From the sequence record PP496441.1: a stretch of 64,000 nt of DNA. One strand, 5' to 3'. Position 1 is the first letter of the stretch. Every line of letters starts with the position of its first letter. The translations under genes and the position numbers were made by a program. A model generated the notes under the pieces. It did not search any database and was not told the origin of the DNA. It worked only from the letters and a program-made list of their open reading frames with translations. Positions 19,631-24,497 of the stretch are shown here, in pieces.

Positions 19631-20083
19631 TCAGTATCCTTTGGCCTTGATAGCCATAAGTAGGCGCAAGACGTGCTTGCATACCAGTGGAACCATCGAG
19701 GCGTTCTTGACGATGGGCTTCTCACCGTTGGAGTACACGATGTCGGCAGCACCTACTCGGTACAGCGCCACTTCCCACGTGAAGCAATGGTCTTCGCAGT
19801 CGCACTCCACCTTGATACCCGCAGCCCGGCTCACCTTGGAAGCACGGTCCAGCGCAGTGATCTTCACGCGGCGCTTCTGCGGGTTGGTGTTGATCCGGGT
19901 GCGACGACTCTTGGCCGTGCACTCGACGACGAGGTTACCCTCCTTGTCAACGGTGCGCTTCGGGGAATACAGGCGAACGTCACGGCTGCGCTCATACGTG
20001 TAAGGCATGTAGCGCGTTGTCTCGTTGATCAGCTTCTTGAGGGGCAATCCCTTCTTACTTTTTTGCTTTACTACGCTCGCCAT
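19631..20083 (-). CDS. SWIM zinc-finger protein
   Basis: 'ECDC...VCKH' CxC-(n)-CxH signature. Confidence 0.7.
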   Translation of the reverse strand: MASVVKQKSKKGLPLKKLINETTRYMPYTYERSRDVRLYSPKRTVDKEGNLVVECTAKSRRTRINTNPQKRRVKITALDRASKVSRAAGIKVECDCEDHCFTWEVALYRVGAADIVYSNGEKPIVKNASMVPLVCKHVLRLLMAIKAKGY

Positions 20084-21656
20084 CGCTCTGCTTCCTTCTC
20101 TTAGCAACCCGATCCCGCGCTTCCTTGGAAGCCTTCGAGCCACGTTTGGTTGAAGTACTGGATGCCTTGGTATGACCCTTCGGTGCCCCGGTCTTGGACT
20201 TCACGCCGTGCTTGACCTTGGCTACCGTGTCGGACTCGTAACGCTCCAGAATGCTGGTGATACGGTCACGTGCGTCTTCCTCGGTCATCTCCGGAACAGG
20301 AGCCCCGTTCTCGTCCAGCACCTGTGTTTCAGGAACTGCGCCGAACAACGACGAGGTCTTGCCGGGGCCAGTGGTCGGCAGCGAGTTCAGGAAGAAGGAA
20401 TACTTGTTCCGAGTCGCGTCGTAACCTACGTCCACTACGCTGTCGATCAGATCGTACAGCTTCATCGACTCACCCTTGCCGCCGCGAGTCTTCAAGTGAC
20501 CGTTTACCACCTCACGCACTTCCTTGTCGGTAGAGTTCATGATGATCTCAGTCATCGATGTCACAATCCGATTGTAGGTGTACATGTTGTGGTAGGCCAG
20601 CAGGAAGGTGGACACGTTGCCGCCAATCACGCTGAGAACGTCGGTGTACTTGATCGCGGTGCACACTGGGCAGTTGCACGGCAGATGGTTGAACGGGCTC
20701 GGGCTGTTCACCTTGTCGAACATCTTGAAGAAGCCCGGCGGGGTGCTGATGTGCTCTTGGAAGTAGTAGCCCTTGGATACCGATTCCTGCAACCACGTCG
20801 AGGCATCACTGGTGATCAGCGGGGCCAGCCCTTTCTTCGCCATGTAGATCAGTGGATAGACCAGCGAGAGCTTGGCGACACCGAGCATGTGGTACTGCTC
20901 GTATTTGCGACCGGTAACCATCTGCTGGATGATCTTGGCAATGGCGGTCATCTGGGTATCGTAATACGTACCACCCATGGCCAGACGAGTTATGTCGTCA
21001 CGCTCTACCAGTTCACGGTAGCGGCTTACTTCTTCCTGCGTGTTACCGTGGAAGATGTTCATCAGCTCCAAACTGGGACGCTTGTTCTGCATCATCAGTT
21101 CGGTGTTCGCAGCCTGCACTCGACCCAAGCGCTGATACAACTCTGGATCGTTGAAGTGCATCGGGATATCGAGCACGATACCGATGTCTGCATTGTTGTT
21201 GTACCACTGGATGATCTCCATCGGGTCTAGGTAGTCGAGACGACCCATACCGAGCTGGAAACCTCCGGAGTCCGCGACGATGTGTCTAGACTTGTCAGCG
21301 AATGCAGTCACGTCACCTTTACGAGTGTTGTGAGAGATACTATCTTTGTTGATGTGCTGGGTGTAGTTGACCATGTACTGGCTGACGCCCATGTCTCGCG
21401 CCGTCAGATCGTCAAACGCACTCATGTGATACATCTCGTCGAACGACCCATCTGCCCAGCGCGTGGACACAGCATGGTGGGTATTGGACACGATGAACAG
21501 GTCACGGTCGGGACACTTGAGGAAGATGTGGTTTCCGCCGATTTCCACTAAGTCGATCTTGTTGGGGTTCTTGGCGTAACGGACGTATACCGAAATGCCT
21601 CCATGCGCGGGGTAGAACACTCCAGCAGGCACCAGTTTGAATTGACCAGGCGTCAC
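20055..21656 (-). CDS. tRNA-guanine transglycosylase (TGT)/DpdA-like base-exchange enzyme
   Basis: 'ADSGGFQ', 'VLDIP', 'FHG', 'AMGG', 'HMLG', 'SDASTW', and Zn site 'CNCPVC...HN'; basic C-terminal tail. Confidence 0.85.
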   Translation of the reverse strand: MTPGQFKLVPAGVFYPAHGGISVYVRYAKNPNKIDLVEIGGNHIFLKCPDRDLFIVSNTHHAVSTRWADGSFDEMYHMSAFDDLTARDMGVSQYMVNYTQHINKDSISHNTRKGDVTAFADKSRHIVADSGGFQLGMGRLDYLDPMEIIQWYNNNADIGIVLDIPMHFNDPELYQRLGRVQAANTELMMQNKRPSLELMNIFHGNTQEEVSRYRELVERDDITRLAMGGTYYDTQMTAIAKIIQQMVTGRKYEQYHMLGVAKLSLVYPLIYMAKKGLAPLITSDASTWLQESVSKGYYFQEHISTPPGFFKMFDKVNSPSPFNHLPCNCPVCTAIKYTDVLSVIGGNVSTFLLAYHNMYTYNRIVTSMTEIIMNSTDKEVREVVNGHLKTRGGKGESMKLYDLIDSVVDVGYDATRNKYSFFLNSLPTTGPGKTSSLFGAVPETQVLDENGAPVPEMTEEDARDRITSILERYESDTVAKVKHGVKSKTGAPKGHTKASSTSTKRGSKASKEARDRVAKRRKQSDGERSKAKK

Positions 21657-22409: not shown

Positions 22410-23507
22410 TTACTCCGGGTTCCGGTCGAAGCCTTTGCCGCGCATGGCGGTGAAGCTCTTCTCAACCAGCCGGTGGATCGATTTCGGCAGCTTCTCACCC
22501 ATGGCGTACCAGCGCACGGCTTCACAGAAGAATTCCGATGGGTTCTTCTGGCTGTACTCACCGATAGGTGATTCCATGATGTTGACCGGCAGGTCAGTGG
22601 TCGGCCACACGGCGTCGGGCACCAGATTGCCGGACAGGAGGATGTTCAGCTTCTCCTCATCCAGATAGTGGTTCTCGCCGACGTACGTGATGATCGCTGC
22701 CAGAGCCGCTTCATCTTTCTCGTTCATGCTGGCGTAGGCCAGTTCGGTGTTGCCCTTCTTGATCAGCGTACGCACGATTCGATCCAGCTGCTTCTTAGAC
22801 GCCGTGTCTTCGATTACGTACTTGTGGTACTCGCTGATCCAGAGTGCCTGAATGGAATCAGGCATCAGTCGGCTCATCAGTCCGTGGGCGAACTCATGCG
22901 CAACCAGATGCTGCACGTAGTTGACGTTCTGAGCTTCCTTCGGTCGCAGGCGAACACGGTCCATTGGCTCTTTCGCCATGTTCACCGTGGTGTAGTCGCC
23001 GTCGTATTTACCTTTCGGCTCATGCAGCTCGATGCGCAGCGGGAAGATAGCGTCCAGCCCCCAGCCTTTGTACTGCTCGTACACCTTGTCCAGCCCGGTC
23101 ATCAAACCTTTGAAGCTGGCTTCGTCCAGATCGGGGATGTAGCTGAACACCGGACCGTAAGGCTTGTCGTCGAAGCTGTCGTGGCGCAGCAGAATGGTGC
23201 AACCGTAGACGCTGCCCGGCTCGGGGCGTGGGCCAAGGTTGAGGATGACTTGAGCGTGCGGGACACGGGTGAGCATCTCGTCGTCCAGCTCGTAGTCTTC
23301 CGACTTGTTCAACGCACCCAAGTCGGCGCCGGTGACTTCGGAACCTTTGAGGCTGTACACGCGCAAGGCCAGCTTGCGGTACTTGGTCTCACCGCCCTCG
23401 TCATCATTCTTGGCCGACTTGCTGATCTTGACGATCACGATATCCCCGGCGTTGACCGGGACCAACGGCACCTCTGGAGCTGCCTTATTACGGTCTTTCT
23501 TTTTCAT
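22410..23507 (-). CDS. Zincin-like metallopeptidase-domain protein
   Basis: 'VAHEFAHGL' HExxH plus downstream 'EYSQKNPSEFFCEA'. Confidence 0.7.
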   Translation of the reverse strand: MKKKDRNKAAPEVPLVPVNAGDIVIVKISKSAKNDDEGGETKYRKLALRVYSLKGSEVTGADLGALNKSEDYELDDEMLTRVPHAQVILNLGPRPEPGSVYGCTILLRHDSFDDKPYGPVFSYIPDLDEASFKGLMTGLDKVYEQYKGWGLDAIFPLRIELHEPKGKYDGDYTTVNMAKEPMDRVRLRPKEAQNVNYVQHLVAHEFAHGLMSRLMPDSIQALWISEYHKYVIEDTASKKQLDRIVRTLIKKGNTELAYASMNEKDEAALAAIITYVGENHYLDEEKLNILLSGNLVPDAVWPTTDLPVNIMESPIGEYSQKNPSEFFCEAVRWYAMGEKLPKSIHRLVEKSFTAMRGKGFDRNPE

Positions 23508-23526: not shown

Positions 23527-23814
23527 TTAAAGGTTGGCAGCGAGTAGTTCGCAGAACTGCTGCACGGTTAAGTACTGGGCCTCGGACTGCTTGACCAGTT
23601 CACTGACCAACTTATCTGGAACGTCACAAGCAATGCCTTCGTAGTCCTCCAATGCCATGGCAAACTCTACCCAGTCCAGCGAGTCAAGGCCCATATCGAT
23701 AACCAGTGTGTCTGGCTGGGCCATGTAAGGAGCGGTGTTAACGTTCAACCTCGGTGTGGGCAGCGCGTGCAGACATTGGATGACAGCAGATGTTACAACA
23801 TTGATGTGAAGCAT
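23527..23814 (-). CDS. Acyl carrier protein (ACP)-like
   Basis: 'PDT...DMGLDSLDWVEFAMALED..GI..DVPD...LTVQQ' aligns with the ACP signature DLGxDSLDxVELxMALEE, with the Ser intact. Confidence 0.85.
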   Translation of the reverse strand: MLHINVVTSAVIQCLHALPTPRLNVNTAPYMAQPDTLVIDMGLDSLDWVEFAMALEDYEGIACDVPDKLVSELVKQSEAQYLTVQQFCELLAANL

Positions 23815-23876
23815 GTATCTTACCTATGACGAATACGAACAAACCCGCCAGACAGTAGCCTAGCGGGTGCTGGGGT

Positions 23877-24497
23877 TTAGTTTACCGCGACTTCAACCTC
23901 GGGTGCTTCCGGGATCGCATTGTCTCGGATACGGGCCGCCCAAGGCTTGTCAGCGAACGTGCCCCGTTTAAGGTGAAGGTGCGGCAGGATCGGATCAGGG
24001 ATTGCCTGATTGGGCAGCAGCGTCGTCTCGATGCGCTTTCCATTACGCTTGCGGGCGCCCAGCTGAAAGATGTACGTTGGGACTCGACTGCCCGCCACCA
24101 CCTTCGGGAACCTGCTATTCAGGGTAAGCTGATGTTCTACGTCTTTTGCTTGATGCAGGAACACTACACCGACCAGGTTGGGATTCGCCAAGATGACGAC
24201 ATCCCGTTTGACCCCGGCCAGCTTGTTGTACTCTTTACCGTCAGCCCGGTACGCAATCTCACACGGCTCGGACATATCGCCCCACGGCATCTCCACGCCG
24301 ACCGGATCGTTCCCCAACTCATCCAGACAGTATGAAGCGGCATGGGTTTCAGCACCTCGGCAGCGGCTGTTAATGATCGCCACCTCCTTCGGGTCGAGTC
24401 CCATGTGCTGAATCACAGAGTTCAAGCATGCAACCATCAAAGGATAGGTCGTGAAACCATAATCCCCGATCACGGCGATCAGCTTCTTATCGGACAT
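23877..24497 (-). CDS. SLOG-family (YspA/DUF2493-like) protein
   Basis: 'KLIAVIGDYGFTTYPLM...IINSRCRGAETHAASY' follows the pattern 'vaitGsR.f.dy...ivsGgArGAD.lA..y'. Confidence 0.65.
   Translation of the reverse strand: MSDKKLIAVIGDYGFTTYPLMVACLNSVIQHMGLDPKEVAIINSRCRGAETHAASYCLDELGNDPVGVEMPWGDMSEPCEIAYRADGKEYNKLAGVKRDVVILANPNLVGVVFLHQAKDVEHQLTLNSRFPKVVAGSRVPTYIFQLGARKRNGKRIETTLLPNQAIPDPILPHLHLKRGTFADKPWAARIRDNAIPEAPEVEVAVN

Follow-up and report, generated by a model that had tools for sequence, protein, structure and literature searches.

Acyl carrier proteins (ACPs) of large phages have already been described, an ACP having been detected in the virions of Erwinia jumbo phages, with phage ACPs annotated as auxiliary metabolic genes (AMGs) (PMC7760394), while freshwater jumbophages carry 'ACP modules', again with phage ACPs annotated as AMGs (PMC13573597). 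The members known so far, such as those of phrog_5934, RSL1, PhiXhv-12, HRDY3, BCSR5, Yersinia fHe-Yen9 and Erwinia Eneladusvirus, are small orphans without a phage-encoded phosphopantetheinyl transferase (PPTase), as is the protein described here, and the annotated ones of jumbo phages are often found among replication genes. Such orphans are scattered through large phages and routinely labelled AMGs, none of them having a demonstrated role. The present gene belongs to Pseudomonas phage vB_PpuM-Pori-4 (PP496441.1, genome of 202,632 bp), a jumbo myovirus that infects P. putida and belongs to genus cluster G3 of the Estonian CEPEST collection (Brauer et al. 2024, PMC7616413). The window, meaning the whole stretch of 64,000 nucleotides that was analysed, corresponds to bases 62,001-126,000 of this record, and eight sister phages are 92-99% identical to Pori-4 over the region.

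The gene Pori4_00108 (WYW01980.1) occupies positions 23527-23814 of the window on the minus strand, coding for a protein of 95 amino acids with a net charge of -10 and a pI of about 4.05, deposited in GenBank as 'hypothetical protein'. A preliminary description had proposed a phage-encoded ACP with an intact phosphopantetheine-accepting serine, which is borne out by PF00550, phrog_5934, the ACPs of the PDB and the predicted fold, the sequence GLDSLD being present as residues 42-47. The attachment motif D44-S45-L46-D47 is encoded at 23674-23685 (minus strand), with TCG at 23680-23682 for Ser45, and this serine aligns with the serine column of nine other ACP-like domains. Helix II, predicted by the AF2 model to comprise residues 45-59 (SLDWVEFAMALEDYE, 23638-23682, minus strand), is the acidic helix used in recognition and looks more canonical than any other part of the protein, keeping the acidic pattern D47/E50/E56/D57, of which D47, E50 and E56 are invariant in an alignment of 10 ACP-like sequences. 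In established ACP work, this pattern is tied to PPTase and client docking.

Regarding the family assignment, the match to PF00550 is marginal, reaching 21.3 bits for a cut-off of 20.8 (E 3.3e-4), or 20.7-21.5 bits in a six-frame search. The signature, earlier called clear, stands as a match to the ACP family but is only marginal by Pfam, at 0.5 bit over the cut-off. The phrog_5934 profile, 'acyl carrier protein', matches with an E of 4.4e-7, and phmmer against the PDB returned ACPs only, the best being that of Helicobacter pylori (E 1.2e-5, residues 10-78). The four-helix structure expected of an ACP is also what AF2 predicts (pLDDT 65), with helix II beginning exactly at Ser45, and all 50 of the top Foldseek matches to this model are ACPs. 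An all-against-all VIA search over 48,161 chains, independent of Foldseek, gave carrier proteins for nearly all of its top 50, the best match having a Z of 7.0 and an rmsd of 2.9 Å over 73 aligned residues. The fold-search scores are middling and the model is moderately confident, and all of them agree on the ACP family. As judged from its sequence and predicted fold, Pori4_00108 is a genuine, highly diverged type-II acyl carrier protein.

The comparison of Pori-4, Peetri, Illi-2 and Aura points to a real gene under strong purifying selection: omega is about 0.06-0.10, and although dS between these four sister phages reaches 0.6, none of them departs from GLDSLD. The serine motif is kept in Pori-4 and in eight of eight sister phages, with no acidic residue at the attachment site in any of them, and the Aura protein is identical to that of Pori-4. 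In addition, the annotated start codon is supported by the first 30 codons, which behave like coding sequence (10 synonymous versus 3 non-synonymous codon differences).

Among the fatty-acid-synthesis (FAS) models, TIGR00517 of NCBIfam matches Pori4_00108 with an E of 5.5e-6 and 26.2 bits, under its equivalog cut-off of 70.45, and the other AcpP models (the equivalogs NF002148-51) score 14-25 bits for cut-offs of 66-106. Because it falls far below the AcpP equivalog threshold, the Pori-4 protein is best described as a diverged, specialised ACP and not as a copy of the host AcpP. The regions of loop I-II and helix III are extended, as seen in the alignment and in the AF2 model, and the helix III-IV region seems longer than that of bacterial ACPs in one small alignment. 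The possibility that the gene is an AMG topping up the host AcpP pool, then sustaining fatty-acid and lipid synthesis over an infection cycle of more than 3 h, agrees with best profile matches to FAS-type AcpP families, with PDB matches to FAS ACPs and with the usual annotation of phage ACPs (PMC7760394, PMC13573597). However, this role is regarded as quite improbable, considering the score of 26 bits for a 70-bit cut-off, the nearest alignable ACPs, which share only 30-40% identity over part of the length, the extended loop I-II and helix III regions, and the loss of the gene from a close relative (L024, below). The host ACP is moreover among the most abundant proteins, which also counts against a supplement of this kind.

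Almost no close kin of the Pori-4 ACP emerged when databases of 5.8 and 1.84 billion proteins were searched by sequence. A word-index protein search returned the query itself only, with a profile adding just two Vibrio phage proteins; phmmer against 1.84 billion representatives gave eight matches below 1e-3, none of them close; pattern scans of IMG/VR with the ACP family and with the neighbouring peptidase found nothing; and tblastn over 50,697 phage records found the ACP in nine sister phages only.

The ACP gene sits inside a block of replication and DNA-metabolism genes, which runs from a primase (on the minus strand) through a Cas4-like nuclease, two or three small genes, a SLOG-like gene, the ACP gene and an HExxH 'peptidase' to a DpdA-like TGT and, further on, a sigma factor. 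This block, with its ACP, is common to Pori-4 and to the Vibrio coralliilyticus jumbo phages GR7B and GR11A. The upstream neighbour (23877-24497, minus strand, 206 aa) has a weak SLOG or 'GTP-binding domain' similarity, and between it and the ACP gene lies a G+C-rich, terminator-like hairpin (23843-23868, minus strand) of 11 pairs followed by the T-rich TTGTTCGTAT; four phages have exactly the same stem, and the spacer behind it varies. Downstream, the HExxH 'peptidase' gene (22410-23507, minus strand, 365 aa, phrog_17197) begins 19 nt after the ACP stop, the same junction measuring 3 nt in GR7B and overlapping in GR11A, and the two genes are probably co-transcribed in Pori-4.

The name 'peptidase' is defined solely by the HExxH motif, in which H204 and E205 are invariant among nine homologues; a nine-sequence profile against the PDB and scans with Pfam and NCBIfam gave nothing beyond this motif, and the AF2 model of the protein is unusable (pLDDT 37). 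The family is present in RSL1, PaBG, Lu11, HRDY3, PhiXhv-12, BCSR5, the Vibrio phages and others. By analogy with the ACP subunits of mitochondrial complex I, mycobacterial EmbAB and MmpL5, the Pori-4 protein could be an obligate subunit of the HExxH protein encoded next to it, with a structural or regulatory role, as Pori-4, GR7B and GR11A all have the ACP gene followed by the peptidase gene, the hairpin precedes the pair and the structural neighbours of the model include ACPs bound as accessory subunits. However, the peptidase lacks an adjacent ACP in L024, Lu11, HRDY3, PhiXhv-12, PaBG, RSL1 and BCSR5, PaBG having no ACP at all, and this wide distribution argues against an obligate pair. The whole block is also syntenic, so the adjacency is inherited and not independent evidence, and a subunit role of this type is considered very improbable.

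The DpdA-like TGT gene of the block (20055-21656, minus strand) is accompanied in the same genome by a preQ0 pathway, comprising two QueC-like genes, a QueE-like gene and a GTP cyclohydrolase, located at 159017-161345, 194422-195393 and 197362-198102 of PP496441.1, outside the window and 75-115 kb from the TGT gene. The TGT and preQ0 genes together are consistent with 7-deazaguanine DNA modification. The start given in GenBank for the TGT-like gene is 77 codons downstream (456 aa) of that of the 533-aa open reading frame (ORF), and the longer form is probably correct, because its alignment with the Vibrio phage homologues of 529-538 aa spans about 530 residues, at 49-50% identity. Also outside the window, at 161347-170876 of PP496441.1 (L026:6347-15876), there are seven consecutive genes coding for 305-694 aa without a Pfam or PHROG match, after which comes a radical SAM enzyme whose C-terminal domain is of the lysine-2,3-aminomutase type, the whole adjoining the QueC-like genes; the seven genes and the radical SAM enzyme may form an uncharacterised modification pathway.

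The positional orthologues of the ACP in the two Vibrio phages differ at the attachment site: GR7B (QJT70969.1, annotated acpP) keeps DSLD, and GR11A_00145, which scores below the Pfam threshold, reads LDDLD, with aspartate in place of serine. The ACPs of Pori-4 and GR7B share 39% identity over 57 aa, a level comparable to the 35% of the neighbouring peptidases, and the ACPs of GR7B and GR11A share only 33% over 43 aa, for flanking genes at 62-80%. The accelerated divergence of the GR11A copy together with its loss of the serine fits the relaxation of a Ser-dependent function. A metagenomic relative of the Pori-4 group much nearer to it than the Vibrio phages, L024 (Logan ERR13715691 contig, 3288 bp), has the same gene order with no ACP, the SLOG-like gene directly abutting the peptidase, at identities to Pori-4 of 63% for the peptidase, 80% for the Cas4-like nuclease and 61% for the SLOG-like protein, so that the locus resembles the outcome of a natural deletion or the state before an insertion. 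The ACP gene is therefore an accessory element of a conserved block: two deep lineages keep it with its serine, one has a degenerate or altered copy, and one has lost it.

No recognisable partner enzyme of an ACP is encoded by the phage. Six-frame profile searches of the whole 202,632-bp record found a single PP-binding domain and no PPTase (PF01648), AMP-binding, ketosynthase, malonyl/acyl transferase, PlsC-type acyltransferase or SDR reductase domain, the control genomes having given positive results. The absence of FAS, PKS and PPTase genes, first noticed in the window, is accordingly a property of the entire genome. The sole acyltransferase-like gene, Pori4_00176, is a generic GNAT far from the ACP and has no conserved counterpart in the related Vibrio phages. 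Many of the ORFs of Pori-4 are unannotated, 156 of the 244 called also being without a Vibrio-phage homologue, and a novel, unrecognisable ACP client may be among them. A phylogenetic profile of genes present in Pori-4 and GR7B and absent from GR11A gave only seven candidates and no convincing client, as the five that were scanned had only QueC-like and N4 gp49-family domain matches and two are probably ORF calls on the wrong strand.

This pattern extends to other viruses, as a search of five further jumbo phages, ACP-bearing or related, likewise gave no PPTase. A neighbour census of 80 viral ACP loci from IMG/VR showed no recurrent partner family and no lipid or polyketide enzymes, the scanned neighbours including DnaB, an RNase H-type exonuclease, a tail-spike-like protein and unknowns. 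Orphan status is thus the rule among viral ACPs, because their neighbours are heterogeneous and without enzymes of lipid or polyketide synthesis.

PF00550 domains are present in PhiXhv-12, HRDY3 (two), Lu11, RSL1 and BCSR5 and absent from PaBG, and in the IMG/VR sample the serine is kept at 79 of 80 loci, the lone exception (L076) having glutamate, which suggests that the attachment site is generally under selection in phage ACPs. Where the serine has been replaced, the substitute is acidic in four of four viral domains: aspartate in GR11A_00145 (L005:4592-4921) and in Lu11 gp353 (L014:1480-1974, minus strand), and glutamate in a Lu11 protein of 241 aa (L017:1003-1728, minus strand) and in the IMG/VR protein L076:2347-3222. 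The rest of helix II is intact in these domains, and an alignment of ten domains shows that the flanking D, L and D and the glutamates of helix II are kept where the serine is lost, in GR11A and in the two Lu11 proteins. Lu11 gp353, which scores 26.4 bits on PF00550, above the Pfam cut-off, corresponds in position to the Ser-bearing ACPs of HRDY3. The change from AGC in GR7B to GAC in GR11A takes two substitutions, and that from TCG in HRDY3 to GAT in Lu11 takes three. An aspartate or glutamate at this site could mimic the phosphate charge, and the ACP-like proteins compared are all very acidic, with net charges from -10 to -27.

The preliminary description had offered two functions, a donor loaded by the host and a decoy of host ACP clients, and these are the two leading readings. 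In the reading that we favour, with about as much for it as against it, a host transferase converts the Pori-4 ACP to its holo form, which then serves a phage-specific client. The reading is favoured because Pori-4, its sisters and GR7B all conserve the serine as well as helix II, and because viral ACPs generally retain the serine. As neither Pori-4 nor the five other jumbo phages carry a PPTase, the loading must be done by the host. The apo-ACP made after infection would be converted to the holo form by a host phosphopantetheinyl transferase, and the holo-ACP would serve the phage-specific client as a dedicated carrier or docking subunit, presumably not acting as an ACP of bulk fatty-acid synthesis. 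The gene would be an accessory module, co-expressed with that of the downstream HExxH protein. Pseudomonads are reported to lack AcpS and to rely on one transferase of the Sfp type (PcpS), so that the loading enzyme in such a host is probably of this type and the host AcpS mentioned earlier is probably the wrong enzyme. Against a host-loaded carrier, the serine is changed to Asp or Glu in otherwise well-preserved domains (GR11A, the two Lu11 proteins and L076), which argues for some phage ACPs functioning arm-free; no partner enzyme family was found in the Pori-4 genome; the gene is dispensable, being absent from L024, whose peptidase is 63% identical; and the AF2 model is only moderate at a pLDDT of 65, with middling fold scores.

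The second of the leading readings, which is possible but rather doubtful, is an arm-independent mimic or decoy of ACP, whose acidic helix II would dock onto a host or phage ACP-binding protein, titrating or redirecting it with no acyl load. Such a mimic might target a lipid-synthesis enzyme, SpoT or the host transferase; MukB, which had also been named as a target, does not fit this host, as to our knowledge it is not expected in Pseudomonas. Helix II is the best conserved part of the Pori-4 ACP, the remainder being very diverged, and the phage has no recognised client or loading enzyme. The replacement of serine by aspartate in positional orthologues through changes of two or three substitutions, the acidic nature of all four non-Ser viral domains, consistent with a phosphate-mimicking charge, and the strong acidity of the ACP-like proteins point the same way, Lu11 gp353 especially, with its well-preserved helix II. 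Published work also describes the overproduction of apo-ACP as toxic to E. coli and SpoT as a binding partner of ACP. On the other hand, the serine is kept in the Pori-4 group, in GR7B and in 79 of the 80 sampled viral ACPs, and the aspartate variant of GR11A is the fastest-diverging copy and may simply be decaying.

A broader form of the docking idea, which is unlikely on the present evidence, would make the ACP-like proteins of the group mimics of holo-ACP and not carriers, with helix II binding a host client (SpoT or an enzyme of lipid or lipid A synthesis), Asp or Glu acting as a permanent mimic of the phosphodiester charge and the Pori-4 copy being still modifiable; it could underlie the (p)ppGpp dependence of Aura. 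The latent period of this sister phage is lengthened on a (p)ppGpp-null host, an effect also seen in unrelated podoviruses of the collection (PMC12814882). As the podoviruses share it, the ppGpp dependence of Aura is not specific evidence for a mimic or for a link between the ACP and SpoT, although it makes such a link testable.

For telling the favoured carrier from the mimic, nature supplies controls: phages in which the serine is kept, phages in which it has become Asp or Glu, and a relative in which the gene is lost. P. putida PaW85/KT2440 and the CEPEST G3 jumbo phages form a culturable pair with host genetics and natural variants, making the role of the ACP directly testable.

Compared with the known systems, the Pori-4 protein resembles AcpP (TIGR00517; PDB 4zjb, 8jfn and 1acp) in its four-helix layout, in the DSLD serine that opens helix II, in its length of less than 100 aa and in the acidic helix II, its best profile and PDB sequence matches being AcpP families. 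It differs from AcpP in a longer loop between helices I and II, in extra sequence between helices III and IV, in being encoded by a phage without FAS genes and in the 26 bits that it reaches for a cut-off of 70. Bacterial 'extra' ACPs, such as P. aeruginosa PA3334, R. palustris RPA2022 and AcpM, are likewise diverged, slightly longer and not devoted to bulk FAS, and the structural neighbours of the Pori-4 model include them; however, they adjoin dedicated enzymes, and the Pori-4 ACP has no recognisable one beside it.

Among phage proteins, GR7B AcpP and GR11A_00145 share the position in the block and the longer helix III-IV region, although at an identity of only 27-39%. Relative to the annotated phage ACPs, the Pori-4 copy lies at another locus, was not recognised in the GenBank annotation and is much more diverged, with 21 bits on PF00550 where the stand-alone ACPs of the group reach 38-58 and the Ser-less domain of Lu11 reaches 26, and it is not detectably nearer to them than to bacterial ACPs. 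Phage ACPs are already catalogued in PHROGs, and the Pori-4 gene is a previously unannotated and unusually diverged member of them.
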